A DNA stretch of 63,348 nucleotides, filler included, from Trichosphaerium sp. ATCC 40318 (lineage: Eukaryota; Protista; Tubulinea), in the NCBI GenBank assembly GCA_038496445.1. It is 4 parts of 4 records of this genome, joined end to end, with 100 filler letters (N's around TTAATTAATTAA, not from the genome) between each part and the next. Parts side by side here need not be neighbours in the genome. Positions count along the whole stretch, not along the records: positions 23,246 to 49,826 come from JALMLS010000468.1; 3 more parts are not named here. One strand, given 5' to 3'. The position numbers and the translations under genes are program-made. A model generated the notes under the pieces. It saw only the letters and a program-made list of their open reading frames with translations, was not told where the DNA came from and did not search any database. Shown here in pieces: positions 1 through 49,826 of the stretch; within the stretch, counting starts at the first letter, position 1; every line of letters starts with the position of its first letter.

Positions 1-262
1 GGAGGATCAGCAGCGGCATCTGGTTGAGGGTTGGGCTCATGTGGTGGAAGATTAGTAGTGGCATCTGGTTGAGGGTTGGGTTCATGAGGAGGATTAGCAG
101 TGGCATCTGGTTGAGGGTTGGGTTCATGAGGAGGATTAGCAGTGGCATCTGGTTGAGGGTTGGGTTCATGAGGAGGATTAGCAGTGGCATCTGGTTGAGG
201 GTTGGGTTCATGAGGAGGATTAGCAGCGGCATCTGGTTGAGGATTGGGTTCATGTGGTGGAC
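1..262. repeat. 42-bp tandem repeat, ~6 copies
   Basis: The unit ggaggattagcagtggcatctggttgagggttgggttcatga is directly repeated and is in frame with the minus-strand ORF. Confidence 0.95.
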
Positions 263-23245: not shown

Positions 23246-23848
23246 AGATTACGCTTTCTATGTAATCAATATGGTACCTCTATTGTACGTACAACATAAT
23301 GAAGCTAAGAGCCATACAAACCAGCAAGAGAAAATGACAATGACTGCCAAAGTTTAGGCTTTGTTCTTCATATTTTCTTACTATTATTTTTCGCACATCT
23401 GCTAGCACAATACTGCAGCTATTATTAAAGCATTGCTGTAGTTTTCTTGTGGCAGTATATGCGATGCTTTCAGTAGAATGTACTCATGCTGTTCTGTTAG
23501 ATAAACTGGAAGAAGACAATAATAAAAGTTTCCTCACAAGAAGCAGAAGAAATTGAAGTATTACCTCTGTTACATGCAGCAATTAAAGAAAAAATATAGA
23601 ACTAATACGCTTTCTACTTGCACGTGATTGTTAAGTTTTGGTTTTTTCTATGTTCTTTTTGTAGACACCTATTGTCTAACAGGGTACTGTAGGAATCAGG
23701 AGTTAATTTTTATGCGAAAAGAAAACGCCATGTAGAAGTCTGCGGTGAAGTAATTATAGATCTGAATGACGACGCACTTGAATGGGCTAAGGAAAGTAAA
23801 TTTCAATTAGGTATTACTTTGTTGGAAGAACACAATGCAAAGCAGTAA
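23246..23848 (+). CDS. 3' part of F-box/ankyrin-repeat gene (inverted-repeat copy)
   Basis: PLLHAAIKEKNIELIRFLL|ESGVNF...DALEWAKESKFQLGITLLEEH are ankyrin-like repeats. Mirror image of 30579-31183. Confidence 0.6.
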
Positions 23849-26800
23849 CCAAAGTTGTAACCTCTAATCAATAAACACAAAGGAATCATGGAAGACGATA
23901 GATTTATTGCTAGCTCTACAATAAGTTTGAGAATTACTCCCTTTTGTAATTAACCCTTAAACATGGACATGCATCAAGAAATGGAATTTGCTATTGCACA
24001 GTCCTCCACGGTATTGTGGTAGCCTCGTGCTACTTTGCAAGCTATATACCACTAGCATATCCTTATGGAGTACTTTACGTGTGCATAAGAACAGAAAGTC
24101 ACGTGCGTACTACAAATCGTGGCTGTAAAAAAGTAGGCTAAACAAGTCACGTGGCATGATATTTTCAGGATGTCCTACAATCACTGCAGGCTCACAGAAA
24201 CGTCTTAGCATACAAACAGACAATAGCGGAGTTGGAAACCGCTCTATTGGCTGTAAAAGTTTACGAAGGTCACGACTAAAATAGAATAACAAATGACAAT
24301 GCGCCAAAGACTAAAGCTGCAGCAATCTGTTTGATGGAATCTCATGGTGTCCATTTAATTGGAAGTAACATTGTAATTTTTTAGTTTAGTTATCTTTCTA
24401 GTAGTAGTTATTGTACACATTGTGGAATTCTTTTTTTTTCCCCTATACATTAATTAGATATTGTCATTTCAGAAATAATGCATTAGGTAACTCGAGTGAA
24501 ACAAACAATACACTAATCAACCATTCACTACAGTGAACATTGTTGTTAAACGACTTTGGATCGAACGATAAATCATCTCAAACGATAAAAATTTGAACTT
24601 GATTGAAACGATTTCAAATAAAAACACTTGATCTTGAATCTAGTTTTTAACCTTAAGGTAAAAGTCTCAATCAAGACCAAACGTTTCTCGATTGAAATCA
24701 TGTATCTCATCTAGCGCAAACGGTTTCAATCAAGATCAAATGTTTTTTTTTTGAAAGCGTGTACCTTATTCACTAGTTGTTTGGCAAAGTTTGATACGGT
24801 ATAATGTATAGCACTGTCAGTAAATATGGTATTTTGCAACACCTTGCTTTGGTATGTCTGCAAACATTTCATGTACGTTATAAACCTTTACAAAAACAAG
24901 AGATAGCAAGCACTATAAATGGACTGCTAGGTCCAATGATTTGGCCTAATCTCTTGACGTTTAGAATGAAAGTAATGAATAGTGTTCTTATTTGAACACT
25001 TCCTGTTCGCTGAACATGAAGACATATTACTTAATAATCTGGAACTGGTTATATCCCTAAAATTGCCACCTGTAGCACTGAGATTCACGGATTTTATGAG
25101 TTTAGAGTTAGAAAAGTTGAGATTTTGATCACGTTCGCTTTAACTTAAGGGAGGCGCTTAAGTTGGTCGGATAATTCACAACAGTATTGTCCGTTTCGCC
25201 ATTTTAAAGTAATACTACCCTTGCACTCAGTCTGTACCAACGAACACTGACACCCAGGGACATTTTCGACTCTCGCCTATTGTCACTTCTAATTCAAATA
25301 ATAGCCAACTTTTGTTGAACTCAGTATGTTCAAATTAGCACTTACTCAATGGTAAGAACATTACTCTACTACAAATCAAAGGTATGTTAACAAACAGAAA
25401 ACAAAATTAATGAAGTCTTGAACTCTACGTTTGCTGACACTACGCGGGTGAGTTTACTTGTATTTGATGTAAAAAAAAAAGAAATGTTGCATTTTACTTT
25501 TATTTGTGTGACCCAATATCTACATTCCATGCTTCTGGAGCATGGCTTATGCAAAAGCTATTGCAATCGCCGACTTGAATTCATACTTTGTAGACAAATG
25601 TATACTTGCTGTGCAACGTCAATGTTATCCTGAACACTTCCAAAAGAATCACTATCTGAATCATAACCATTTTTTTCAGCACATTTGAATTCTTCCTGTC
25701 TTTTTAGTTCTTGTAGAAAGATAACAACACTATTTGATATGTAACGCCTTTGCTTTGGTTGGTCTTTCAAATATGATCTGTAAAAAACCAGTGAGATTAG
25801 GTACTATCTAACCAACAATGGGATGAAGTATTAAATGCTCAAAAAAAACGTCAGAAATGCCCACATAAAGAAAGTGGAGATTGTAACTTTAAAAACATGT
25901 CCACGGTTTAGAAAAGGATTCACGTGTTGTAGTTATCTTTTCAAAGATATAGGAGTTTTCACAATGCTAGTGTAAACGTCTCAATGTAAAAACAACAGAA
26001 ACTGGTTTGCTCCAAAACACTTGCCTGAAACAGTCTATGGACAGTAATGTTTCTAGAGCAGTAACCTTAACTATATCCTGATCACTATTCGATAGTACAT
26101 ACTTTATGACAGTGATAATACTGCTTGCATGCTTGATAGCCAGTGTTTGGGATGCCTAAGACAAAAATCTCAATATTATCTTAACTTTAAGATAGTTCAA
26201 TAGTTCAATGCAAATATAATGGCTAAGTAGCACTATCTAGTATTGTGAAGCTGTAAATAAAGATGATGATGGATGAATGTACCTCTACACCACATTGTAT
26301 TAGTTTGATAGCTTGGAGTTGTTTTCTGGTGTTGTTCACACATAACTTAAAACACTTTGGGATAATGATACCAAAGAACTCTGGCCATTTTCCATTTGCT
26401 AATTCAACCCTTGCAACAGCTTGTAATGGCATAGATTTTGACCTCACATAGTTTGTATCACAATTCCATAAGTATAGATCAACAGTCTTTTAATTAGAGC
26501 GTCAGATTGTATTATGTTGTAAAAAGGAAAAAGAAACAACATGTACTTTTTTTTTTATATCTTCCTTGACCTTCTGATCAAGCATGTGCCATTTCATCTA
26601 ATTAACTATTTAATATGACTAGCATAGTAGTTATTTTAAAGTGTACTGTAGCTTGTATAAGCGAGTTCTTGAAACTGATTGAAGACATTAACATAATTTC
26701 TTTGGGTAAGCTGTTGTTCATTGTTAAGCGTAGAAACGCTGTTAAAACCATTCCCTTAGAGAGATAAAAGTTAGTCAGTACTTAATAAATTAATAAGTTG

Positions 26801-27061
26801 CAGAAAAAGCATTGATGTGCAAGGCTATCAAGGTCCAACAAAAAAAATGTTGGTAAAACACGTGATCTCTACTAAAAGTCACCGCCAGAGAAATATGTTA
26901 ACAAACTTTAGTAGCCGATATGAATCAAGTGTTAATTCTAAAACAGCGTCACAGTCTTTTTTTGGTTCCACTTTTCAACGATTGCTACAGTAACCCCAAT
27001 AAAAAAAATAGTTACAAAAATATTTCTACTCTGTTCATTGCAACCGAAGTGTTGAAAGCTA

Positions 27062-28870
27062 ATGTTGTTGTCTTTTTACAAGATTAGTTCTCTAAAACTG
27101 TCATCCATTAATGCCCACCTCTACCAACGAATAATTGATCGATTAGTGAAAAGAAAAGCAGTGCCAAGGCAACTATATAAAAGAATGCTGGGTGTCATGG
27201 CATGTGCATTGTACGACAACAGTAACTTAACATATTTGTTAAGCCGTATACTGTTTCTTCGCAGTACAAGAATGGAAGTAAGCGATGAACAACTTATTAA
27301 TATACTAAGTGGTTGTAAATGTAGGTACGTGGCATTACTGGATGTTTTAGATGATAATCTTGTAATAAGACAACAACATTCGTCAACAGGCAATGAGAGA
27401 GCTAGAAGAGTTCCAAAACAAAGAATTGGTACGATTAAAACCGCCAATCGTTGAAAGTAACCAAAAAACTGTCTGTGACGCTGTTTTGTTGCTTCAACAA
27501 GTAACACATATCGTTTACTAAAGTGGTTTGCAATTTCTCTGCGGTGACTTTTAGTAGAGATCACGTGTTTTACCACCATTTTTTTTGTTGGACCTTGATA
27601 GCCTTGCACATCAATGCTTTTTCTGCAACTTATTAATTTATTAAGTACTGACTAACTTTTATCTCTCTAAGGGAATGGTTTTAACAGCGTTTCTACGCTT
27701 AACAATGAACAACAGCTTACCCAAAGAAATTATGTTAATGTCTTCAATCAGTTTCAAGAACTCGCTTATACAAGCTACAGTACACTTTAAAATAACTACT
27801 ATGCTAGTCATATTAAATAGTTAATTAGATGAAATGGCACATGCTTGATCAGAAGGTCAAGGAAGATATTAAAAAAAAAGTACATGTTGTTTCTTTTTCC
27901 TTTTTACAACATAATACAATCTGACGCTCTAATTAAAAGACTGTTGATCTATACTTATGGAATTGTGATACAAACTATGTGAGGTCAAAATCTATGCCAT
28001 TACAAGCTGTTGCAAGGGTTGAATTAGCAAATGGAAAATGGCCAGAGTTCTTTGGTATCATTATCCCAAAGTGTTTTAAGTTATGTGTGAACAACACCAG
28101 AAAACAACTCCAAGCTATCAAACTAATACAATGTGGTGTAGAGGTACATTCATCCATCATCATCTTTATTTACAGCTTCACAATACTAGATAGTGCTACT
28201 TAGCCATTATATTTGCATTGAACTATTGAACTATCTTAAAGTTAAGATAATATTGAGATTTTTGTCTTAGGCATCCCAAACACTGGCTATCAAGCATGCA
28301 AGCAGTATTATCACTGTCATAAAGTATGTACTATCGAATAGTGATCAGGATATAGTTAAGGTTACTGCTCTAGAAACATTACTGTCCATAGACTGTTTCA
28401 GGCAAGTGCTTTTTGGAGCAAACCAGTTTCTGTTGTTTTTACATTGAGACGTTTACACTAGCATTGTGAAAACTCCTATATCTTTGAAAAGATAACTACA
28501 ACACGTGAATCCTTTTCTAAACCGTGGACATGTTTTTAAAGTTACAATCTCCACTTTCTTTATGTGGGCATTTCTGACGTTTTTTTTGAGCATTTAATAC
28601 TTCATCCCATTGTTGGTTAGATAGTACCTAATCTCACTGGTTTTTTACAGATCATATTTGAAAGACCAACCAAAGCAAAGGCGTTACATATCAAATAGTG
28701 TTGTTATCTTTCTACAAGAACTAAAAAGACAGGAAGAATTCAAATGTGCTGAAAAAAATGGTTATGATTCAGATAGTGATTCTTTTGGAAGTGTTCAGGA
28801 TAACATTGACGTTGCACAGCAAGTATACATTTGTCTACAAAGTATGAATTCAAGTCGGCGATTGCAATAG
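27062..28870 (+). CDS. Fragmentary multi-exon hypothetical gene running from the spacer into the right arm (mirror copy on - strand in the left arm)
   Basis: Open exon-like segments (27062-27454, 27979-28203, 28658-28870) with splice-like boundaries. No domain recognised. Confidence 0.3.
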
Positions 28871-30578
28871 CTTTTGCATAAGCCATGCTCCAGAAGCATG
28901 GAATGTAGATATTGGGTCACACAAATAAAAGTAAAATGCAACATTTCTTTTTTTTTTACATCAAATACAAGTAAACTCACCCGCGTAGTGTCAGCAAACG
29001 TAGAGTTCAAGACTTCATTAATTTTGTTTTCTGTTTGTTAACATACCTTTGATTTGTAGTAGAGTAATGTTCTTACCATTGAGTAAGTGCTAATTTGAAC
29101 ATACTGAGTTCAACAAAAGTTGGCTATTATTTGAATTAGAAGTGACAATAGGCGAGAGTCGAAAATGTCCCTGGGTGTCAGTGTTCGTTGGTACAGACTG
29201 AGTGCAAGGGTAGTATTACTTTAAAATGGCGAAACGGACAATACTGTTGTGAATTATCCGACCAACTTAAGCGCCTCCCTTAAGTTAAAGCGAACGTGAT
29301 CAAAATCTCAACTTTTCTAACTCTAAACTCATAAAATCCGTGAATCTCAGTGCTACAGGTGGCAATTTTAGGGATATAATCAGTTCCAGATTATTAAGTA
29401 ATATGTCTTCATGTTCAGCGAACAGGAAGTGTTCAAATAAGAACACTATTCATTACTTTCATTCTAAACGTCAAGAGATTAGGCCAAATCATTGGACCTA
29501 GCAGTCCATTTATAGTGCTTGCTATCTCTTGTTTTTGTAAAGGTTTATAACGTACATGAAATGTTTGCAGACATACCAAAGCAAGGTGTTGCAAAATACC
29601 ATATTTACTGACAGTGCTATACATTATACCGTATCAAACTTTGCCAAACAACTAGTGAATAAGGTACACGCTTTCAAAAAAAAAACATTTGATCTTGATT
29701 GAAACCGTTTGCGTTAGATGAGATACATGATTTCAATCGATAAACGTTTGGTCTTGATTGAGACTTTTACCTTAAGGTTAAAAACTAGATTCAAGATCAA
29801 GTGTTTTTATTTGAAATCGTTTCAATCAAGTTCAAATGTTTATCGTTTGAGATGATTTATCGTTCGATCCAAAGTCGTTTAACAACAATGTTCACTGTAG
29901 TGAATGCTTGATTAGTGTATTGTCTGTTTCACTCGAGTTACCCAATGCATTATTTCTGAAATGACAATATCTAATTAATGTATAGGGGAAAAAAAAAGAA
30001 TTCCACAATGTACAATAACTACTACTAGAAAGATAACTAAACTAAAAAATTACAATGTTACTTCCAATTAAATGGACACCATGAGATTCCATCAAACAGA
30101 TTGCTGCAGCTTTAGTCTTTGGCGCATTGTCATTTGTTATTCTATTTTAGTCGTGACCTTCGTAAACTTTTACAGCCAATAGAGCGGTTTCCAACTCCGC
30201 TATTGTCTGTTTGTATGCTAAGACGTTTCTGTGAGCCTGCAGTGATTGTAGGACATCCTGAAAATATCATGCCACGTGACTTGTTTAGCCTACTTTTTTA
30301 CAGCCACCGATTTGTAGTACGCACGTGACTTTCTGTTCTTATGCACACGTAAAGTACTCCATAAGGATATGCTAGTGGTATATAGCTTGCAAAGTAGCAC
30401 GAGGCTACCACAATACCGTGGAGGACTGTGCAATAGCAAATTCCATTTCTTGATGCATGTCCATGTTTAAGGGTTAATTACAAAAGGGAGTAATTCTCAA
30501 ACTTATTGTAGAGCTAGCAATAAATCTATCGTCTTCCATGATTCCTTTGTGTTTATTGATTAGAGGTTACAACTTTGG

Positions 30579-31450
30579 TTACTGCTTTGCATTGTGTTCT
30601 TCCAACAAAGTAATACCTAATTGAAATTTACTTTCCTTAGCCCATTCAAGTGCGTCGTCATTCAGATCTATAATTACTTCACCGCAGACTTCTACATGGC
30701 GTTTTCTTTTCGCATAAAAATTAACTCCTGATTCCTACAGTACCCTGTTAGACAATAGGTTGTCTACAAAAAGAACATAGAAAAAACCAAAACTTAACAA
30801 TCACGTGCAAGTAGAAAGCGTATTAGTTCTATATTTTTTTCTTTAATTGCTGCATGTAACAGAGGTAATACTTCAATTTCTTCTGCTTCTTGTGAGGAAA
30901 CTTTTATTATTGTCTTCTTCCAGTTTATCTAACAGAACAGCATGAGTACATTCTACTGAAAGCATCGCATATACTGCCACAAGAAAACTACAGCAATGCT
31001 TTAATAATAGCTGCAGTATTGTGCTAGCAGATGTGCGAAAAATAATAGTAAGAAAATATGAAGAACAAAGCCTAAACTTTGGCAGTCATTGTCATTTTCT
31101 CTTGCTGGTTTGTATGGCTCTTAGCTTCATTATGTTGTACGTACAATAGAGGTACCATATTGATTACATAGAAAGCGTAATCTGTCAACTTTGGAGTTCT
31201 TTACATGAACAAATACAAACGGCTCAATAGTCTTTGTTATCCTCACATAATGAGTTCTTACTATTTTTGCCACGCTTAGATTAGACTCAAATATGACTAT
31301 GCTCCAATACACACTAACACAGCTAGCTGCTTGTATTGTTTTATCGTCCATTCCTTGGAATATAATCACTAAAATCTAAAATAACTATTAAAGAGGTTAT
31401 TAATGCTTATTGATTACCTCAGGAAGCTTTAACGGATTTAATGTTGTCAT
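30579..31450 (-). CDS. F-box + ankyrin-repeat protein
   Basis: MTTLNPLKLPE|ILVIIFQGMDDKTIQAASCVSVYW (F-box) followed by the ankyrin exons. Confidence 0.65.
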
Positions 31451-32719: not shown

Positions 32720-33200
32720 AAAAACAGTAAAACGTATTTATTTTTTCTCACGGCTACAGGTTTATATTAAGCTCTCATACTTACTGTGTAGATTCAAAGC
32801 ATGCAGTGCTTACACCGCAGCACATTCAACTGCTTAGCGAAAAATTCTCTATAACTTTGAGGCTACAGTAAATATGCATGACGTCAAGCTATTTGGAGCT
32901 AATTAACCCAGTACTAAAAGAAAACTGTTCTGATTTATTTGAAGAACGCGTAATGCTGACTTTTTGTACCTGTACAAATCAAAGATCAATGGTATGAACA
33001 CCAGACTGTGCCTTGATATGTTACACAACATCCATACAAATTGTAAAGCTTGATTGAATGAACACCAGCAAAATGCTTTGACAATATCATCAGGTTTGAG
33101 AAGCCGCTAAACGTGCTTGATTAGTATGGCGTAGGATGTATTCTAAAATCTCTGTTGGGAAGTCTAATATGCTTACCTGTGCACAATTGGATATATTAGA
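32720..33200 (-). pseudogene. F-box-containing gene, apparently disrupted
   Basis: SILDFPTEILEYILRH (F-box start) followed by in-frame stops. Confidence 0.4.
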
Positions 33201-33487
33201 ACATAGTAATAAGTGTAAGAACTTACAAAACTTAAGGGACCCGTCAGATCTGACTATACTCGAAAACCAAAAGGCACAAACAACAGATTGGGCTGGATTA
33301 CTTCTTATGTTAGTACACGTAAAATGATATTTGCCTTTGCGCAGAGCATGCACTTTCATGCTCTGCCGTTTTAGAACCAAGGTTCTACCAAAAATAGACA
33401 GCAACGTAGTTTGTAGAAAAAAAATGTAGCCAGTAAAGTACATTAAGGAAAGTCACATGACTAACAGTTGCCTAGTTACAAAATACC

Positions 33488-36400
33488 ATGGCTGAAGAAG
33501 CATCAAACGCTATTGTGACAGTCACCATTGTTGGTAATGATACGAATAATATAAAACAAAGGTTACTCGACTCTTTCGAATCAGAGTATTGCTTTCTCAA
33601 AGGAGGTGAGAGTACTGGATTAGATTGTACAAAAATATCTGATACAGGCACGGGTTTCTCGCAAACCAATGCAAGTTGAGTCTAAACTAAACGTACTTTA
33701 GAGCGACACTACAACGAGCGTTCGGTGCTGAAATGGAGGCTAATGGTACTAGAGATTTACGCAAGCAGCTAATTACAATTTAAGTAACTTTACCTATAGT
33801 ACAGTTACGAATCAGACCCAAAAAGAAACCTATCCTACCCAGTACGAGCTAGAAACTTTTATTGTTGTTAGCGAAATCAGATATAAATTTGATAAAAAAA
33901 AAACCGTTTTGTTTGTAGGTAGCTGACGTGTTCATTCTCATCTTCTCAATTGCTGATCCGAATAGCTTTCAAAACATAAAAGACAAGGTTTGTTGAGTAC
34001 GATTAAAAGTTGTCCACTGTGCTAACACAAAAGGTGTTAGTGGATACCAGAAATAAGACGCTTTGCTCCTTATACACGTTATTTGCTGGTTGGCTGTGAG
34101 CGAGAGCTAAGGTGTGATGCAAGATTAGTAAAAAATCTTGCTGACAAAGGATTACATACGGTTACTAATGCTCAAGGTTTCTCACTAACGCCGCAGTCTT
34201 TTTTCTAATTATCAAAAAGGTGTTAAAATGGCACATGAAATCGGTGCTTTTCAATACACAGAGTGTTCATTCACTGAGACTCAAACCAATATTGATAAAG
34301 TGTTCGATACTTGCATGTTTAGGACATCAAACATCAGCAGAGTGTATAATGGTGTGAAATTACTTATCCTTGGACATGGCGGTTCAGGTATGTCACGCTT
34401 ACAGGCAGCCTATTAAACCCTTTCAGGCAAAACTACCCTGCTTGACAAAATAGATGAACAACGAAACAAAGATGTCTTGAAATCCACAATATCTTTAGAT
34501 ATGCGCTCATTGAAGCTTGTTAAGAACATGTCAATCAAAGCATACGATTTTGGAGGTCAAATCGAGTATCTGACGAGTCATAAATCTTTCTTTTCAAACA
34601 AAGATTCGCTCTATATTATTGTGGTAATGTTAAAACTTTGCCAAAAAATTTTCATTAATGCTCACGTGATTTTTACAAGGTTGATGTGTCTGCAGATTTA
34701 AAAAACCAAACACAACAAATAAAACACTGGCTTGAGGTTCTTGATTCCAAAGGGTTACTATATGCAAAGCACCTAAGGCATTTAATAGTTGTCGGCAACA
34801 AACTTGATCTTGTTGTTGATCATAAAAATGATCTAAGCAAAATTGCAAGCAACATATCGAAGCAACTGCAGTATGTATCAAAAATACCAGGAAATAAGAT
34901 ACAAGTTATTTTCAATAGGGATACAATCTTTTCATCTCTATCCAGTGCGTTAAATTCTTTGTTGTGGTGTTTTCTAATGAAATTAATAGATAAAAGTGTG
35001 GATAAATTCAAAAAAGTGCTAGTAAGTTGTATACAGTCACTCAAAACGAATGTACCATACCTGTGGAGAGTCTATGAATTTATTCTTGTCGAATCAACCT
35101 TATTTGATAAATATCAAGTACTTTGGAAGCTGTAAGACATTGCTATCTTTCTTTTTATGTAACAGTCTGCATAGAGAAGATCTGTATCAATTTCTTGAAC
35201 GACACAAGGGTTTTGTACGGCAAATTATGCAGACAGATGGTAGATATAGTGAAGCATGGGTAAATCATATGCTAGGAGAAGAGAGAGAAAGCAACGACAA
35301 GCTGTTAGTACTTGCTATTGAATACTTGCATTGTATAGGGAAAATAACATACAATAAGGTATTTGCAGTTTGTTAATAGCACTGATTGATTACTCTAGCA
35401 AACACAATGGGTTTGTTTGAGGCCAGAAATGATTGCCCAAGTTATTGCCAGTTTTGTAGGTCCACAACAACATATCAACCGAGTACACGGATATACCAAG
35501 ACTCTCAAGACACATAGAACAGCGATTGTAAGCTATTTTGTTGCCAAAGAAAAAATCAAGTCCATACCAGGTCTTAGAGCAATTACTGATAAAGAGTGTG
35601 ATACCATTTTATCTTTTATGGAAGCACTCAACATATGTTACAAGCTCAATACAGCAGAAGTGGTACAGCATTGTGTAAGTATTAGAATTTCACACTTAAC
35701 TTGTTGGCTAGGAAAACTATGGTCAAAACGGATACTTGTTTTATAGCTTGAGACCTGAAGCTGAGATGATGTATCTACCTCCTCCAATGCCCAACGATCA
35801 CAAGGAGGTGTTTATAAAGGATAAGAGGAAAAAGAACAAAAGCATGAGAGTTTGTCACGTGACCAAAGGTTGTTAAAAGAACTTATAGAGTACCTTTAAT
35901 TTCTTTTAGGCCACAAAGATAGACGTGGTGGGCCAGTTTCAGAAAAAAAAGAGAAAAAGCAATTAATAATCACTAGTGACCTACCGAAATTATCTGCAAA
36001 GAAAACTTTGGTGTTTCACTGTTTGGATCAGAAAAGAGGCAATATTAAAGTACAAGTGAAACACTCTGAACGGGCTTGCTTTTCCTTCCTCAAGACCGTT
36101 CGAGTACTAGCTTTCAATTTAAAAATAGAAAACAAACGAATTACTGTTGACGTTTTCAATGAACTTCAAGGGAAGCTACGAAGTATGGCCAAGGGTTGAT
36201 GTATTTCTCATTTTTTTCTTGTAGGGTTTCAAGATAGTAGATACAAGTTGTTTAGTAACTCTATGATTCTAAAAGATACGGATGGGAACGTCATGTGTTT
36301 GTACTTCAATAATGAAAATATAACTATTGTTGTCCGTGGCCTTGTTCCCGAGACTTGGAAGGTACTGTTCCTAATGTTCCATTTTATAACTTATTAATTA

Positions 36401-38459
36401 CTAGCAAAATCTAGCAACAGAGTGTAATGAGTTAGGTCTTAGACAATATCCAATTTGCCCTTGTGCTGTTCAAGTGGGCGAGATAGTACGGTTATCAAAG
36501 AGTGAACTTAAAACCGGTAGAAAGTGTACCTTTACAGGGCTTCAAATAACCGCCAAAGAAATAGCCCAAGGCTTTCCTTGGCAGCCTAGTTTTCTCAATC
36601 CTCTATGGTGCACAACCAGTAGATATTCAATCATTGAGAAACGCCTAACAAGGCACAAACATCTATGGAAACGAAAAGGAGCTCTGGAGTATACTGATCT
36701 TACACCCGATGAAGCTTTTGATGTATTTAAATAGTCATTTTCTTGCACTTACACTTAATTAAGGATCGCAAAGATGAATACCTTCGTGTTCGTGATATGT
36801 TCTATAAGTTTGTGGGAAAGGACGGAAGTTCCTTGTTTGAGATAGTAAAGACTACTGTGCTACATAATCAGGTTCTTGAGAGCAGTTTTACTAAAACCTA
36901 CAACAAACTAGTACAAAGGCTGTTAAAGTCCAGTACTAGCGCGCCATTATGCTCCGGTGGGTCCTAACATTATGAATTACACTTCAACTTATACTATTTA
37001 GGATCAGATAAAAAAGAAACAGAAAAGCAACAGTGGCAGCAATGGTGAAACAAACATTTGGATTGCGTTTTACTAACTAAAGAGTAATGGTAGGATCCTA
37101 TCTCATTTGGAGCAATACACCATGCGTGTCTCTGGTAATGAACGTATTAACCTCGTAACAGCTTTTAGTGGCACTTCTGAAGTACGTTCAAGCTTAAATT
37201 TAGCTCGAATTTCTATTGGTGTTTGTAGGATACATGCTTCAAAATAGCCGAAAACAACTTTTTGGATGCAAAAGACAAAAAACGGATGGGCATCACAGTG
37301 ACTGATCCAGGATACTTTGGTAAGTTTTGCTGTTCTATTTAACGTAATTATCATCTAGGTGATGGCATATACTTCACACAGTATCCTTCTTATGGTACAC
37401 ATACTTAAGAAAGTCATTATACATAACCAAAGATTGCAGGCTCATTGTATGCTGAAAAGGCTGAAAAAAAACAAGTTCAATGTATGGTTATCTCTTGGGT
37501 CATGATGGGCACGTGTTTTTTATTGAAGAGGGAAAAAATTATTTTGCTATCTCACATGCGTATAAGGTGACCCATATCCTGTAACTGAGGATCCTTTCAA
37601 AGATGGGGCTTCATCACTTCTTGGGAAAGGCTTAGTTGTACAAATCTTGTTTGTAGCCAGTGTTTAATCTTTTTGGTGTAGGATGGATACGACTCACATT
37701 ACGTTGTCACAAGAAGTGCAAATATTAAAGATCTTCAAGTTCCTTGTAAGCCGCACGAGGATCCTGAAGCTGATGAAATAGTTATTTTCAACAAAGATCA
37801 GGTACTTTTACAAAGGTTTACTGTTGAGTCTTTACTGTTGACTAGATCTTACCTCGATACATTGTGTACTATAAACGTGTTGATACAGCTATTGTTAACA
37901 ACAATAATGGAATGGTGTTTAGTCAACTTAGAGATAAAAACTTGGAATGGCGTGATGCGGAGAAACTTGTTCTTTGGGTTGATAACAATTTATCCAATCA
38001 AAACAAACAATTGAAAAAAGAAATAGAAAAATCAAGCAACTCTAGAGTTCACGTGCGGTTTGTGTATTTGAGTATCGTATCTTGACTTTATTAGATAATA
38101 AATATGACATCATCCACAGAGCTTAAAATATGGCTTGAGACTATTGCAAGACATTTACAAGGTAAGAAGTTGATGGTTATGACAAATAGATATCGCAAGA
38201 ATGATGGTAAAGAGAATGCAGCGTACAATCTTATACTGTACGCCCTCGCTACTGTTGCACCTCAGTTAAGCTCATGTGGTTGTATAATAGGCTTTTACGT
38301 AAACACAAGGAATGGAAGAGTATTCCTATTGTCGTTTTTTGCGGTAACGCCAAAGATGCAACGCATCTTGAAAAGTTGAAGTTTACAAAAGTCACTGACA
38401 ATGCCACTCAAGTTTTTACGTGGTGTTCAACACTAAAGAATAACCCATTTAAGAATTAA
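33488..38459 (+). CDS. Roco-family protein: degenerate Rho/Rac-like domain + Roc GTPase + COR + PARP-like ADP-ribosyltransferase + receiver-like domain
   Basis: Rho-like: ADVFILIFSIADPNSFQNIKDKWIPEIRRFAP...MAHEIGAFQYTECS. Roc: KLLILGHGGSGKTTL, STISLD, YDFGGQIEYLTSHKSF, IVVGNKLD. COR: IEYLHCIGKI..VCLRPEMIAQVIASFV. ART: AFSGT, TDPGYFGDGIYFTQYPSYG, WVMMGDPYPVTE, GYDSHY, ADEIVIFNKDQILPRYIV. C-terminal LVLWVDNN...IPIVVFCG. Confidence 0.85.
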
Positions 38460-38657
38460 TAAAAAATCTTTCAACATAGTATTTTCTATTTTGTGAGAAC
38501 AGCCTGGGGGACTAGGGAACAAAGAAAAAGGCTACATGGCTTAGACAAAGAGGTTACTCATTCATATTCATGTCCCGTAAATAACATTGACAAGGAAGGG
38601 TTGACTTATTTAGCCTTTCTTAAGAAGGCTATTAATTTTGCTGGAAAATAGGAAAAA

Positions 38658-40265
38658 ATGCTCATCCCCTTCCTTTTTGTATCTTTAGCATGTTTTGTAT
38701 TGCTGTCATGCGCCCAAACGGATCCATGTTACAATCGGCATGAAATAAACGTTAAATGCTATGGCTTTAACGCCAATGACTCTACACAGTACCTAAAACG
38801 CGCTTTCTCTCAAGAAACTTATAAGGTAATCTATAACTGCTTTTTCCGCCATTTCTGGCATTACGCTTTTTCCTGTCACGTGCCTAATCCAAAACAGAAT
38901 GTTGTTCTGACTTTTCGGTTTTTTTAGGTCATTGTGCCATTCATGGGTAAACCATGGATAACTCAACCACTCCATATCTCCCAAAGCAACCAGACTATCG
39001 AATTTCAAAATGGCGTTGAGGTTCTAGCGAAGGAAAATGCTTTCAAACGTGAATCTGATTGTCTCTTTACAATCTCTCATGTTAAAAATGTTTCGTTTGT
39101 ATCCTCTGGAAAGATTGCAACATTTCGCATGAGACTCTCAGATTATGCTAACGCGTCAAAGTACAATAAATCAGAACATCGTCATGGTATCGAGATTATG
39201 TCATCCTCTAGCATAAGTATTGTAGGACCACTGTTGATCACTGAGACTGGTGGAGATGGTGAGTACTCAGTATGCATAAAACTTACACTAATGATAGGTA
39301 TTTATATCGGCGAAGGTGATAGTAGTCAAGTGCTAATAAAGGATGTAGTCTCAGATCGGAATTATCGACAGGTTAGCTGTATCAAATTCGTTTTTACCTT
39401 ATTTTTGTTAAAGGGAATTACTGTTGTTTCTGCCACTGACTTGGTTGTGGAGGGATGCGTCTTCTCACATACTAATGGAACACCACCACAAGGCACGTGT
39501 TGTTTATAGTAAATATGTCTAAAACGTGGTAGCGGGAGTTGACATTGAACCAAATACACCGCTTGATAAGCTTGTGAACATTACGTTTTCCAGTTGTTCG
39601 TTTATTAATGTACACGATACTGTCGCATCTTGAGCTTATTGTATTTGTAGAATACAGGTGAAAATATTCATATGTACTTGGGAAAGCTTGACAAAACTGC
39701 TGATATTTCCATCTTTATGACTGATATAAAAGTTATTGGTGGTTCCTCGTATGGTGTGTCAATTGATATTGGTGATGAGGATTTAACAGGGACTATTGCA
39801 ATCACAGAAACAAGTATAGTAGACTCTTCTAGAGCAGGTTTGTACAGAGTTTGGTATTGATACAAACACGCCATTTAGGAATTTTTGTTTCACACAAAAA
39901 AGTTACATCAAATCTGTTGTTCAAAGATGTTGTGTTATCGAATGTAGCATTGGATGAACAAAATCCAATATTTCTTTTTGATGATAGATTGATGGGTAAT
40001 ATTAGTTTCGTTGACATCACAGTATACGATTCTCAGGATAGGTACATCATCTTTAGAGCGTTGACTTTAAATTCAAAAAACCAGCTTATTAAAACTGTTT
40101 TTGCTGATTTGTAAAAGGCATTTTTTCGTTGGCAATGTGTCAACAGTCGAAAATATCAGTGGAACTTTTACAGTTTATAATGAGGTAAACAATTATGGAT
40201 GTATTCCTCAATGGAACTCAAAGACATTGACTAATATTACAATGAATGTGGATTGTAAAGCATAA
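38658..40265 (+). CDS. Secreted right-handed parallel beta-helix (pectin-lyase-like) protein, bacterial type
   Basis: Signal peptide MLIPFLFVSLACFVLLSCA. Motifs GFNANDST, VIVPFMGKPW, EHRHGI, GGDGIYIG, DRNYRQGITVVSA, TNGTPPQAGVDIEPN. Confidence 0.85.
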
Positions 40266-40985: not shown

Positions 40986-41720
40986 TTAATTGACCGTTTT
41001 CACTCTACTTCTCCTAATTTTACCAGCGCTATAATGTTCATGGCTCCATAGCTGTCCATTAAAAGACCAACGCTTGCACTCGCCATGATATTCTGCTTTC
41101 TTATAACTACAATGTAACATAATTTGTCCATTAGGATACCAACGCTTAAACTCTCCGTCACACAAGTTATGTACATAGTTACACTTGATCTTCAAGATAC
41201 CAGTTTCATACCATGCATTGTATTCTCCCTCGACCATGCCATTGACATAAGTGTAGAGACAAGACAATTTACCATTCTTGAAGTAAAACTTGTACACTCC
41301 ATGTTCATTACCAGCGACATAGGCACTATGTTTCCTTATTGTCCCATCCCTATACATATTCTTAAATTCCCCATCTAGTTTACCATCTTTATAATTACAT
41401 TGTGATTGTAATTCACCAGTATTGTACCAACTCTTGTAGACTCCATGTCGTTTACCATTATTCCAAAACAATTGGCAAATTTTATTGTTTTCGCGTCTTA
41501 GTTTCTTTATCCATTTGCCATGTTTCTTCAGTTCTATAGTAAACCTCGTTGATGTAGCCCCGCGTTTTGATAAGAGAGGCCACTTTACATACACTTCATA
41601 GTCTAAATCGACAATATCAAGCTGTAACTCGACAGGAAGATGTAGGATGTTAAAACCATCTGATTTTTTGTCAGTTACTGTTTTGCCAATACCACTAGAT
41701 ATATTTCTTATGTTTCTCAT
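40986..41720 (-). CDS. F-box-like motif + MORN-variant repeat protein
   Basis: ILHLPVELQLDIVDLD followed by ~7 repeats of [HD]GxYKxWYxxGxL. Coding region is intronless. Confidence 0.85.
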   Translation of the reverse strand: MRNIRNISSGIGKTVTDKKSDGFNILHLPVELQLDIVDLDYEVYVKWPLLSKRGATSTRFTIELKKHGKWIKKLRRENNKICQLFWNNGKRHGVYKSWYNTGELQSQCNYKDGKLDGEFKNMYRDGTIRKHSAYVAGNEHGVYKFYFKNGKLSCLYTYVNGMVEGEYNAWYETGILKIKCNYVHNLCDGEFKRWYPNGQIMLHCSYKKAEYHGECKRWSFNGQLWSHEHYSAGKIRRSRVKTVN

Positions 41721-42953
41721 TGTTATAACTCTATGGAAAGGTACTAATGGTAGCGTACTCAATTTAACGTCTTTGTGTTTTGACCGTCCTTTACTTTGCG
41801 AGATCAGAGTTCATAAAAACACGTGTGGTATTTTGGATAGTTGCCGTGTTTTGTTTCAGGCTTGAACCGCTACTTCATTGCTCTTTAACACGGAAACTTG
41901 ATACATAACGGACTCTAATATATGATAGGAACTAGAGCGATTTTTAGCAAGCAGTTCCTTTTAAAAAATTCACTGAATGCTCAACAACAACAAAAGCAAT
42001 TTTTTTTAAATTCCTTATGATAGTCTGTCTATTACGTGTCCCAAAGTTGGGACCTTTCATATCTTATCCTATCATAACATTAGCATCACTACCATTTTTT
42101 AATACCAACGCATCACCAACATTTTCGTCAAAATAACCTTACTTTAATTAGTGTTTTGGCTATTATTATACTTCTCATCCACTACAAAGAAAAAAGGTAC
42201 AAAAAATCAGTTTTGTTTTTCAATATCCTGTGTAGTCCTCTTTGGAAAACGTGGGACCCTCGCCGGAACAATGAGCGGTTATTTAGTAGGCACCCAATTA
42301 CCATCTGCATCTACCAAGCATACGCTTTGGCTGGACTATAGGACAATCTCTTCTGATGATATGTCAGATGTTAAATAAGACCAACTCATTCTTGCAAGGT
42401 GCATCCTCCAAAAAAAAAGCACCACGTTCCTTTGCGTTGTTAGAACGTGCAACTACAATAAGGAGAAATAGAAACCTTTACTACACAGGTTTGTTGAAAT
42501 GTCAAATCAACCGTTATCGCCTGTATCTTGTAAGTTGTGAAGTATTTTGAGGTCTCCGTGTTTTGCCAGGGAGCTGTATCTACTTTTATACAAATACCCG
42601 TTTATAGAAGCGTCATAAAATCGTCTCTTCGCTAAAGCGACCATAATGCGAGCGAGATGTAGTTTAGGAGGATGCATCTATAAAAACTATCTTGGGTAAC
42701 TTCTCAAAGAGGCTGCCAAAACGAGTCTACATGATTTCTACAAGGTGGCCATACTGATTGACGATAAGTCAAAGGATAATTAAAACGAATCAACTTGTAT
42801 AGCTAGCACGTGTTAGCTACACATATGAATAAACTACCAAGTACGTTGCATGAATGCGTGTGTCGTGAATTCACTACACAGAGACGTACGCTATTGAAGT
42901 ATGAACTACTTTGACTTATATCGATTGTATTTTGTTGTGACAACGACTTCGTA

Positions 42954-44869: not shown

Positions 44870-45209
44870 GGAGCACGTAAACGGAAAAAAAAAAATAAAA
44901 TATCTCAAAATTGTAACTTTCTCGTCTACTCTTTGCATTTGTGGCCTTGCACGCGTATGATTCTACGCTTGCGACATGCGGAGCAGAGTTGCTGCGATTG
45001 ACTTGTTTTTCCTGAATTGTCGGCCATTTAAAATGCCCCAAATGTACTCATTGCTGATATCTAGTGAAGCGTTTAGGACGCGTTTGGAGTGAAAATGAGC
45101 TCTTTTAAGTTTCACCGTTAAGCAATTGTTAATTAGCAAGTAATTTTTGGGGTTGTGAAGCGTATAACTGGGTGTGGACTTAATTGAAGTCGTGGTCAGC
45201 CACCAGGAA

Positions 45210-47932
45210 ATGAAACGCAGTCAAGAAAATGCTGTAGGACAGAAGAAGGCCAAGAGACAGCGTACTAGTACCGCAAAGAGAGCATGTGTATTATGTAGAG
45301 CTAAACATCAAAAATGTGACGGAGACTTTCCCTGTGGTCGTTGCAAGAAAGGTAATCGTCAATGCGCATATCCAGCACCAAAAAAACGTGGACCTATTCA
45401 AGGTAATTGTTAACATCAATTACAAAACGTTCAACGCTTATTAGGGCGTAGAAATGCACTCACACAAGAGCTCAGTGCTGTCAAATGTCAACTTGAACAA
45501 CAAAAAGCTGAAATAAATCACTGGAGAGCCATGTATGAGCGTGCTACGCGATCACAGGTAATAAAAGAATCCGTCAATTATTCCTCGGACCGTTTAGATG
45601 AAAATCAGTATTTTCTCCTATTTTACGAACTCACTGGTTTACAGGCAACTCTATGGAAGCTGTCATCACACCTTGGCTTGTCATCAAGTATTTCAACGTA
45701 TTTATCAACATACAAAGATTACTTATACCCATGGACGGTACGTACAAATGTTTCATTGTCAGATCATTTTTGGGTAAAAACAACACGTGGGTGTTTTTGT
45801 GAAGCTTAAAAAATGTTTCAAGGGTATACCGTTGCATAATTGGACTGCGAATAATGTATTAGATGTATTCAGGGAGAATACAAGTACGATAATTTTCAGA
45901 AATTAGGCTAAGAAAACGGCGTTATTTTTCGTAAAATATCAAGAAGGATTGCTAAAAAAAAACTCTAAAGCATGGACTGCCGATCCACGTATGTTAGAGA
46001 TACTTGGTATACTAGCTCTGGGGTCTAATATAAATGGTATTGATGGACATACAGATCATTTCAACCAAATGGCGAGGCAGGTTTTACGTAACTTGTATGA
46101 TACAAGACACCCTTGTGTAGCAGGTGCATAAATTGTTTTCAATGTGCACTGAGTGACTTTTAATCTAGCTGGTTTGATACTTCTTGCAACACAACAATTT
46201 AGCTACGGTGATTTTGCTCTAGGTTCATATTACGTTACAATGGCGAACCGTAAGTATCTTTTGTTTGCTCAGTAAATATTCATTTGTTCTTTTTTTTAGA
46301 AATGTTGATGACACTCTTGTCAAGAAGAGGTTGTGATGAACAACAAAGAAAATACTTGCTCCTACTCAAGAGACAAGTTTCTTTATACCTAGCTGATGTA
46401 GCAAGCTCAAGGTACAATCCTATTTTTTAAAGCATTATTTGCGTTCGAAGTTCAACCAGAAATTGAACTGACTGTTGTTTATACAGAGAGCACTCTATGC
46501 AATTGTTTATTGAGGTCAACAATGAAACTGATCCAATGCTTAAGCAAGCACGGTTTGATGATATGGATTCCGCCCAAGCAATACAGATAATGTGGGCTGC
46601 AGTTGGAAAGGTAACACTCATAATTTTTTTGTTGTTATCGCACTACTACAATATTTAATTTCTTTTCAAAAGGTTTGGCTAAAGATATCACAACCTGTAT
46701 TCATGGCACAACTTTGGGGCCTAGAAAACCTCAAAATGCGTACACTGGTAATCAATAATAAGTCATTTTTTTTTCTGTTTATCGTGTTGTTGATCTTTAT
46801 TAGACAGCTTCAGAGTATGCACAAGATATGACAAGACTTCAAGAGATACAAGATTTTGCGAACATAACGTTTAAAGATGAATGTCAAATGCTAAAAAATA
46901 GTGTTAAAGTAATGATTTGTTCTGTGAAGTCTGTTGTTCACTTTGCTGGAAACAACCTTCAACGAGCAATAGAGGTAACCTCTTTTTTTTCTTTTATTAT
47001 TATTCAGTCCGAAAATCACGTGACAGTACTTTTTTTGTACTTACTAACGTATCTTTGTTTAAAAGGAAGCAAAAGCGATTTGGCAAGATTTTAAAAACGA
47101 TTGGTTGATGCAAAAGTACTTTCCTGGTGCTTTATGCTCTTTACATGATAACTGCTTTATTGCTATTTATGCAGGCGACGTTCAATTTTTTGAGGAGGTA
47201 CCACCATAGCAAGCAGAAAGCGAATTTTTTCAACTTTTTTGTAATTCTTTTTGCTAACATTTTTGCCTCCTGTAGTGTATGCTGTACTATATTAATTTTG
47301 CGAAAACGTGGCCCATAGCAAATATGGTAATTAAGTACGTAATTAAAAGATTTTTCTTTTGACAGACGTTTGTCAGAAGTTATCGTTTTAATTTATTGTT
47401 CGCTAATAATGTTATTAAGGGCACTACTGAAGCAAGCAAAGTCTGTTTCACTTCCTTACAGCTCTACTCTTGATCCAATAATTGATGCACTGGAAGATAC
47501 TCAATGGCCTTGTTTCTCTAATATGAAGAAAGAACAGCACAACGAAACGTATGTTATTTGATAACGATTTTTGACGAGTTCCAAAAAAAAACTTGACACA
47601 TACCTCTAGAGATGGCGAGGTAGAGTTTTTACCTCTACCTGATAACACATTTAATCTTGACGCATTTAATAATGGTGTACTACAGCGTAAGGCTATATTC
47701 TAACTTCAAAAACAAAAAAGAATCAAAAATGTACTGACGATCTTTTTTTTTTGCAGTGCCGATAAGTGACGACATCTTGACGCTACCTCCTCAACAGATG
47801 CCTGAAACGCTAAGCCCTGGTTTGGATATGAGTGATATAGTACTCGAAACACCTTCTCCGAACAGCATGTTCAGTCCAGTAGCGAGTGATGAAACTAATC
47901 CGTTTTTTAATGATCAAATGTTTGTATTGTAG
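45210..47932 (+). CDS. Zn(II)2Cys6 (Gal4-type) transcription factor, multi-exon
   Basis: RACVLCRAKHQKCDGDFPCGRCKKGNRQCAYPAPKKRGP is the canonical binuclear cluster. Coiled-coil, helical middle region and acidic tail follow. Confidence 0.9.
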
Positions 47933-48550
47933 CCCAAAAAAAAGAGAAAGATCTTTTTCAAAAAAAAGGCAAACAGGCCTGCCGTTGTATATAAATGACC
48001 TTAAAACTGCGTGGGCGTATTTTAAGTTTTAAATGCTCAACGTAGATTGGTGTCACAAGATAATGACAACGTGTCATACTAATGATTCAACGCGTACCAA
48101 GACAGTAACAGCGTTTGTGGTACTATTAGTAACCTCAAAAGTAGTAGAAGTATCAAGCCTTCTATGGAAACCGTGGTAAAACGACCTATCGTGAGGCATT
48201 CAACTTTTGATCAAACAAAACACAATGGAAGTGTGTACACTTCAGTCTAGTTTACGAACCGTAGAATCTCAACCCAGGCGCGTAACTTGATGTACCACTC
48301 AATACCGCAGCGTGGTTTTCAAAACGTGACCGCACACAAATAAATCGACCGCAAGTGAGCCACAACCCTTCGTACGAGTTCTGGTTGTATAGAAACATAC
48401 ACGCGAACCTTATGCGCTACGGTAGAGGCCACCACTGAGTGATTTTACACATTCAATATAGGTCCTCTGGTAGAAAGTTGCATATTATGGCAGCAAATTC
48501 CAGTATTCAAAGCGCACAAGTCGGTTAGACGCATGCTAGTGTAGCGAAAC

Positions 48551-49826
48551 ATGACAACTGACAACTTTGATGACTTTGTAGAGGGTCTACTACGCGATCA
48601 ACCTAATTTTAAATTGGCAAAACAAATTTGCTTTTCCGAGCTTACAACCGACTTTTATGATGATCACGTTGTGCGACGAGGAGAACCGCTTGTAGTAACG
48701 GGCGTAATGGAAAATTGGGCGCAAACCGAAATGTTCTCAATAGAGTGGCTGCGAGCTAACTGGGGCGACACTGAGTTGGTCAATTCACCACGGGACGTTA
48801 ACACACTGGAAGACCTAAAAGGCTGGAATTTGGAACGCTTCATACGCTATTTGACAGGGTAAGCGTCTCTAGGGACACTCACGCGCGTGAAGAAAGTACT
48901 CATGATGTTTAGGGAAGACGAGGACGACAGAGAACTGTATGGTAAGTCCGCACTTCTTACACGCACTGTACGCCAGTAAAATCAATCTACGTTGTAGGTA
49001 AAGACATCGCTTGCGCTCCTCAATGGAAAGAATACTTCTCTGAGGTTTTACAAGATTATTTTTGTTATCAACCAAACGACCTCGTCTCTTGCTTAGATCC
49101 GTGCGTATACCCATGAGCGCCTTTATGTATCACTAACACTCCTTCCCAGCGAATTGCAGCCGTTAACCCTGATGACGTATATTGGCAAACAGTACGTTTT
49201 ATTTGTAGTTTAGCGCTTGTTTATCATTGTAAAACAATGTGGAAAAAACGTAAAAAAAAATGGTGCCACAGGAAATTTCTTTTATTCAGCACTTAGCACA
49301 ACGCTTGCTTTTGGGCGTTTAGTACCAAAAATGAGCGCGTTGAGAAACTGTACTGTTTTCTATTTTTTTGTTGTACAAAAGGGCGCAAAAAGCCTACATA
49401 AAGTCTTTTATCAACCTCGCGATCGTAAACGTTACGCGAGGAATGAGCGACTTGACCATTGAAGCGAGAAAATAGCACGTTTCGTAATTTCTCAAAAAAT
49501 GCACAATTCCGACCTTTCTGAGCGTATCAACCTCTTACAAACATTCAAAGCGCCTAAACAACAAAAAACGCTCCTTTTTTTACGTACTGGTTTTTTTTTG
49601 CTAACACACGCATAGACTCACTTACACGCCCGGTCATACAGATGTGATGGGTTCATTAGGCCATAATTTGTTGCTGTCAGGCGAAGAGGGCGCACATGCG
49701 TACTGGTTTATGATGAAATCAGGTGATGTAGAAAAAGCGTCGCAATTGTGGAGAGAAAACAAAGGGCCGCTCTCCCATGATCTTCACTGGCTTCCTCCAG
49801 AATTTTTTGTTGGTTGTGGCTTTGAT
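48551..49826 (+). CDS. JmjC-domain dioxygenase, 3'-truncated by the contig end
   Basis: GEPLVVTGVMENW..FSIEWL, LYGKDIACAPQW, LMTYIG..TPGHTD (HxD iron motif), SLGHNLL..AYWFM. Confidence 0.85.

Follow-up and report, generated by a model that had tools for sequence, protein, structure and literature searches.

Roco proteins were discovered in Dictyostelium and then found in prokaryotes, metazoa and plants, as related in a review that also treats their mechanism and the varied effectors joined to Roc-COR (PMC6337361); a term search of that review found no mention of fungi. AP-GTPase/Roc and COR modules with variable C-terminal effectors have been described, including in immune-type systems (PMC8195603, PMC7159879), and invertebrate Roc-COR has been found fused to TIR or Death domains (PMC9334734). 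How the nucleotide state of Roc-COR controls the LRRK2 kinase is still debated (PMC6337361). We analysed a stretch of 63,348 nucleotides (nt) from Trichosphaerium sp. ATCC 40318 (assembly GCA_038496445.1), in which four parts of four records are joined by 100-letter fillers; this whole stretch is called the window, and all positions refer to it. Within the piece from record JALMLS010000468.1 (positions 23246–49826), the plus strand at 33488–38459 carries what appears to be a single intact gene, rich in introns, that encodes a multidomain member of the Roco family. The protein, of ~1264 residues, probably consists of a Rho pseudo-GTPase domain, a Roc domain, a COR-like region, a PARP-like domain with a Ser-Tyr-Glu (S-Y-E) triad and a further C-terminal domain, in that order.

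This arrangement would resemble that of the Roco kinases (human LRRK2 and LRRK1, Dictyostelium Roco4 and GbpC), in which a Roc domain with intact motifs is likewise followed by COR and then by a C-terminal enzymatic output, with a presumed common logic of nucleotide- and dimer-controlled output. By contrast with those proteins, the predicted protein has no leucine-rich repeat (LRR), ankyrin or WD40 repeats, a PARP-like domain replaces the kinase, and a Rho pseudo-GTPase has been added at the N-terminus; sequence similarity is very low (E ~0.4 for the LRRK2 Roc). A Roc-COR core with swappable effectors is also the likeness to MFHAS1, the Chlorobium tepidum Roco protein and AP-GTPase-COR conflict proteins (PMC8195603, PMC6337361), although such minimal proteins usually carry N-terminal LRR sensors, unlike the protein described here. 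A limited literature search returned no report of Roc-COR joined to a PARP-type effector or preceded by a Rho-like domain, and Roc or GTPase was not found as a PARP partner by term search of two surveys of PARPs, one covering every domain of life and the other 534 fungi. The fungal and human triads given in the latter survey are H-Y-E, H-Y-I, H-Y-L and H-Y-Y, with S-Y-E not among them (10.64898/2026.07.25.740670). Such an arrangement represents an uncommon reshuffling of domains rather than a novel type of system.

Profile, PDB sequence and ESM Atlas searches were run with single exons as queries. Exon 5 alone (65 residues) matched the Pfam Roc profile (PF08477) with 31.7 bits, above the curated cut-off of 27 (E = 1.9e-7), and gave weak alignments to the LRRK2 Roc domain in PDB sequences (E ~0.4). 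The Roc G1, G3 and G4 motifs are intact (Table 1), and the domain is therefore expected to bind GTP, in agreement with an earlier note on this DNA that had called the second of two GTPase folds a normal Roc. The ESM Atlas neighbours of exon 6 included clusters annotated Roc and COR-A, with top scores of 0.95 and 0.93 to unnamed eukaryotic clusters; an AlphaFold2 model of exon 6 alone was unusable (predicted local distance difference test score, pLDDT, 41.5). Downstream of Roc, Pfam COR-A was matched by exon 8 (14 bits, profile positions 96–132) and exon 12 (13 bits), in the correct order, against a cut-off of 35.3. The segment IEYLHCIGKITYNK, followed by QTQWVCLRPEMIAQVI, appears to resemble the COR-A core of LRRK2.

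Exons 13–21 carry a series of motifs that is colinear with a signature common to PARP10/14/15-type mono-ADP-ribosylating PARPs, PARP9 (triad Q-Y-T) and PARP13 (Y-Y-V): EY..V...F, an xGT strand, GxGxYF, YDS and E-x-V-V-F...Q..P.Y-hydrophobic-hydrophobic-x-Y/F. The likeness is by motifs only, the first triad residue here is Ser, and the macro, WWE and zinc-finger partners of those proteins are absent. Three patterns from the signature (GIYFTQYPS, EIVIFNKDQ and ILPRYIVYY) each occurred once in a six-frame translation of the 26.6-kb piece at 23246–49826, compared with 0.010–0.020 expected per shuffle, figures that overstate the significance because the patterns were composed after the sequence was seen. 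All three fall in the expected order in a span of 510 nt, two adjoining the predicted exon 20/21 junction. A chance origin of these motifs is unlikely all the same. Among the pocket residues of PARP1 (His862, Gly863, Tyr896, Ser904, Tyr907 and Glu988; roles in PMC4157409), the equivalents of Gly863, Tyr896, Tyr907 and Glu988 are kept. On these motifs, a PARP-type ADP-ribosyltransferase (ART) fold for exons 13–21 is supported but not proven.

Besides the post hoc composition of the patterns, several results weigh against the proposed arrangement. COR-A scores were below the curated threshold on every single exon, and exons 7 and 8 matched no Roco protein in PDB sequences; the COR domain that the earlier note had placed after Roc is retained here as a COR-like region, weakly supported by the two sub-threshold matches and the Atlas look-alikes. 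No PARP match was obtained for any exon in Pfam (stop-to-stop segments and exact exons, E up to 10), where Roc, Ras/Arf and, weakly, COR-A were the sole families matched, for exons 13, 17 (with flanks), 20 and 21 in PDB sequences, or for the 64-residue exon 13 in the ESM Atlas, where no PARP look-alike appeared and recognition was below threshold. The exons of this region encode 11–69 residues, below the HMMER filter range, so that single-exon misses are weak negative evidence. What had been described as a PARP-like domain with a Ser-Tyr-Glu triad thus stands as far as FSGT, GIYF and DEIV, all present in order, but not as a profile, PDB or Atlas match of any single exon searched. At the position of PARP1 His862 is Ser, giving by motif alignment an S-Y-E triad in place of H-Y-E or H-Y-hydrophobic, and, when aligned without gaps, Gly stands where PARP1 has Ser904, Ser residues being found at +6 and +9 from the stacking Tyr. 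A HMMER search with exon 6 (150 residues, the largest exon) against 1.84 billion representative proteins gave no accepted relative, two matches with many stretches per protein being taken as repeats, and no relative of exon 6 was found in JGI metagenome contigs. Lastly, the gene model is predicted from DNA sequence alone, and its exon 1/2 junction is uncertain: the chosen donor at 33675 (GTTGAG) is poor, and an intron of 248 nt is atypical of this gene.

Because His is replaced by Ser and the Ser904 equivalent by Gly, the pocket for the nicotinamide of nicotinamide adenine dinucleotide (NAD+) is altered and activity is uncertain; we consider a catalytically active domain somewhat less likely than not. 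These two substitutions, together with a divergence too great for a Pfam PARP match on any exon, would be in keeping with a pseudo-enzyme, one no longer able to bind NAD+ or to catalyse, which would serve as a scaffold or would sense ADP-ribose or nucleotide, the whole protein then being a GTPase-regulated adaptor. PARP13 is generally held to be a pseudo-enzyme, and PARP9 was first described as one. However, the catalytic Glu, both pocket Tyr residues and the flanking signature are kept, which is unexpected in a domain long free of catalytic constraint, and we consider loss of function a serious but somewhat unlikely alternative. It is improbable that the C-terminal third has no ART fold at all, its motifs being due to chance or convergence and the protein being a Roco with an unknown C-terminal region. 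The failure of every single-exon search to find PARP would agree with such a region, but exons of 11–69 residues are too short for profile matches to be expected, and three independent patterns are correctly ordered and spaced, each expected 0.01–0.02 times by chance (with the overstatement given above) and two meeting exactly at a splice junction, in company with the FxGT strand, YDS and the N-terminal EY..V...F element.

With an ART-type domain as the preferred reading, a mechanism can be proposed from what is known of LRRK2 and its Roco relatives (PMC6337361) and of AP-GTPase-COR proteins with variable C-terminal effectors (PMC8195603, PMC7159879, PMC9334734). Roc would bind and hydrolyse GTP within a COR-mediated dimer, and its nucleotide state would control the C-terminal output module. 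That output would be a NAD+-binding or mono-ADP-ribosylating PARP-like domain where LRRK2 has its kinase, and the dead Rho-like domain would most likely mediate protein interactions or localisation. GTP-gated ADP-ribosylation and an immune role might follow from these analogies; an active effector that is gated by GTP or dimerisation, consumes NAD+ or ADP-ribosylates through a previously unseen S-Y-E triad, and possibly takes part in cell-autonomous defence, is in our view unlikely. If it were nevertheless correct, the gene would be a natural case of an LRRK2-family Roc-COR switch driving a non-kinase enzyme. A Roco protein with ART-type output would indicate that the switch is movable between effector chemistries and would offer an independent system for studying the coupling; it would also add to the known partner domains and triad variants of PARPs. 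The value of the locus is limited by a gene with no detectable relatives and a PARP assignment made by motifs rather than by profile or structure.

The last ~190 residues matched no known family. The earlier note had called this C-terminus receiver-like, a label for which the searches gave no support: Pfam gave no receiver match for exons 21–23, PDB sequences gave no match for exons 21 and 23, and the position of the phospho-acceptor Asp, at the end of the third strand (MVMTN), appears by eye to be Thr-Asn. Also by eye, hydrophobic and polar residues alternate in this domain as in a strand-helix fold.

At the other end of the protein, exon 3 matched Rac3, Rac1, RhoD, Cdc42 and RhoE in PDB sequences at about residues 97–140, the best match (E = 4.3e-5) being to Rac3 residues 98–140, a stretch that we take to include the Rho insert; the insert region is kept in the domain described here. 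All 60 of the 60 PDB matches to residues 2–32 of exon 4 were to the Rho family, at approximately residues 144–175 (E ~0.1) and colinear with exon 3, and Pfam Ras matched the same stretch with E = 0.015. The motif IVGNDTNNIKQRLL, quoted earlier for the first GTPase fold, is present at 33527–33568 (+). The P-loop position reads GNDTNNIK (33533–33556), which differs from the G1 consensus GxxxxGK[ST], and the G4 position, aligned to TKLD of Rac3, reads CERE (34095–34106; GCERE at 34092–34106) instead of [NT]KxD. Between these two positions switch I and switch II are unrecognisable, and the stretch is shorter than in Rac. Because the G1 and G4 motifs are lost, the domain is predicted to be a Rho-derived pseudo-GTPase and not a functional Rho, with canonical nucleotide binding not possible; the PDB matches of exons 3 and 4 and the motifs read directly bear out the earlier description of a Rho/Rac-like fold that lacks a P-loop and has GCERE at G4. 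RhoBTB and Miro also carry an N-terminal Rho-type G domain within a larger multidomain protein, and Miro pairs it with a second GTPase domain. Here, by contrast, the partner is Roc-COR, and the Rho-like domain is without the P-loop Lys and Ser/Thr, G4 and most of the switch regions, so that no nucleotide binding is predicted.

The same domain had been proposed to be a decoy for bacterial Rho-targeting toxins; in its integrated form, the pseudo-Rho would bait Rho-modifying toxins, and its modification would trigger the Roc-COR switch and the ART effector. A Rho-derived, non-catalytic domain would suit that role, plant NLRs have integrated decoys, and Roc-COR modules are found in immune-type proteins. 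The known target residues of Rho toxins all lie in switch I and switch II, however (Rho Thr37/Rac Thr35, Asn41, Gln63/61 and Tyr34/32). In the predicted protein this stretch (EYCFLKGGESTGLDCTKISDTGTGF) is shortened and unrecognisable, and part of it may even be spliced out. The decoy proposal is therefore disfavoured, since the segments that toxins modify are the degenerate or missing parts of the domain, and we consider it very unlikely.

The segment that may be spliced out is a possible extra in-frame intron of 42 nt in exon 1 (33606–33647), with a strong donor (GAG|GTGAGA) and a CAG acceptor at 33646–33647. Its removal would drop 14 residues (GESTGLDCTKISDT), among them the DTG left over from switch II; the reading frame stays open whether or not it is spliced. 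A short exon 1, with the donor at 33605 joined straight to exon 2, was rejected as the sole model.

The gene model was built manually from the DNA, with phases checked exon by exon. It runs from an ATG at 33488 to a TAA at 38457–38459 and comprises 23 exons with 3795 coding nt (1264 codons and a stop). Across the gene, the 23246–49826 piece is devoid of long open reading frames (ORFs) and has instead dense short open segments on the plus strand. Each of the 22 introns begins with GT and ends with AG; intron 1 has 248 nt and the other 21 have 34–56 nt, and CTAAC- or TACTAAC-like branch sites were read in several. Introns this small, together with the Zn(2)-Cys(6) gene farther downstream, led us to reject a human origin and fit a compact, intron-dense eukaryote, perhaps an amoebozoan or an early-diverging fungus. 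GC content is 37.3% in exons and 33.5% in introns, with ~36% in the piece as a whole. Read-through of any intron was rejected: 16 of the 22 contain an in-frame stop in the frame of the upstream exon, and the remaining six, whose lengths are not divisible by three, would shift the frame if retained.

Two domain boundaries fall inside exons. In exon 4 (34220–34387), the final Rho-like helix is followed by VKLLILGHGGS, which forms strand 1 and the P-loop of Roc; in exon 21 (37846–38052), the final PARP-like strand runs on into the C-terminal domain. Only 41 nt of intron lie between the COR-like region and the PARP-like domain, and the EY..V lead-in of the latter lies upstream of the first Met in exon 13. 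These boundaries and the 41-nt gap make separate genes very unlikely, and all domains are very probably on one transcript, as judged from the exon layout. A divergent F-box-like ORF ends ~40 nt before the ATG, and ~200 nt past the stop, at 38658, lies the start of a gene that opens with a signal-peptide-like segment; with neighbours this close on both sides, further exons are not expected. It is highly improbable that the model is an artefact or the locus a pseudogene, that is, an over-fitted frame-preserving model of a locus not expressed as one protein: the model was built manually and its donor sites are degenerate, only the GT being constant, but there are 22 consecutive junctions with 21 introns in a narrow 34–56-nt range, homology motifs run across junctions (the P-loop across exons 4/5, the PARP C-terminal signature across exons 20/21), 3795 nt are free of an in-frame stop in any exon, and an equally small intron appears to be required in the downstream gene, where two segments in the same frame (38652–38924 and 38928–39506) are separated by a single stop.

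Table 1. Exons, domains and motifs of the predicted Roco gene (positions in the window).
Feature	Position	Strand	Basis
Exons 1–6	33488-33674; 33923-33987; 34041-34176; 34220-34387; 34427-34623; 34680-35131	+	Manual model
Exons 7–12	35166-35358; 35399-35674; 35712-35868; 35910-36182; 36225-36361; 36405-36722	+	Manual model
Exons 13–18	36764-36956; 37002-37044; 37094-37181; 37229-37319; 37359-37394; 37440-37514	+	Manual model
Exons 19–23	37567-37637; 37682-37801; 37846-38052; 38095-38237; 38291-38459	+	Manual model
Predicted Rho/Rac-derived pseudo-GTPase domain	33488-34330, exons 1–4	+	PDB sequence and Pfam matches
Roc GTPase domain	34351-34980, from the end of exon 4 to codon ~100 of exon 6	+	Pfam
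Roc G1, GHGGSGKT	34372-34387 and 34427-34434, split by a 39-nt intron at exon 4/5	+	Read
Roc G3, DFGGQ	34546-34560	+	Read
Roc G4, NKLD	34797-34808	+	Read
COR-like region	34981-36722, end of exon 6 to exon 12	+	Sub-threshold Pfam COR-A, Atlas look-alikes
PARP-like (ARTD-type) domain	36764-37881, exons 13–21	+	Motifs
DEYLRVRDMF...LHNQVLESSF (EY..V...F lead-in)	Exon 13	+	Read
NER...AFSGTSE	Exon 15; FSGT 37164-37175	+	Read
Ser at triad His position	37167-37169	+	Read
GDGIYFTQYPSYGSLYA	Across exons 16–18; GIYFTQYPS 37364-37390, GIYF 37364-37375	+	Read
CMVISWVMMG	Exon 18	+	Read
GYDSHYV and EADEIVIFNKDQ	Exon 20	+	Read
EIVIFNKDQ	37775-37801, last codons of exon 20; DEIV 37772-37783	+	Read
ILPRYIVYY	37846-37872, first codons of exon 21	+	Read
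C-terminal domain, ~190 residues	37882-38456, rest of exon 21, exons 22–23	+	No family match

We also noted other features of the 23246–49826 piece, in which Rfam and tRNA scans gave no matches. A near-perfect inverted repeat occupies 23246–31183, with arms at ~23246–26885 and 27541–31183, five blocks that are each 100% complementary and a 655-nt spacer; the piece ends within its left arm, and it could be a real palindrome, a foldback element or an assembly artefact. The ORF upstream of the Roco gene (33093–33452, minus strand) has a weak F-box-like match (FPTEILEYIL), and the ~40-nt gap between these divergent reading frames implies a very short shared promoter. The downstream gene (38658–40260, plus strand) begins with what resembles a signal peptide (MLIPFLFVSLACFVLLSCAQT) and gives a weak match to a right-handed beta-helix. 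An intronless ORF at 40989–41810 (minus strand) contains MORN_2 repeats (Pfam, 1.3e-23) and, close to the N-terminus, the F-box-like motif LPVELQLDIV. An exact look-up found no identical protein on record for this ORF; its best relatives, at ~40% identity, are transcriptome proteins, one from the amoebozoan Trichosphaerium sp. ATCC 40318 and two from MMETSP transcripts, and weaker matches include proteins named as bacterial YwqK-type MORN. Further along the plus strand, a fragment of a JmjC/cupin-like gene (48545–49826, weak Pfam JmjC) runs into the edge of the piece, and a multi-exon gene at 45168–47930 starts with a Zn(2)-Cys(6) binuclear cluster (Pfam Zn_clus, 4.5e-9), a domain that is mostly fungal and is also present in some amoebozoans.

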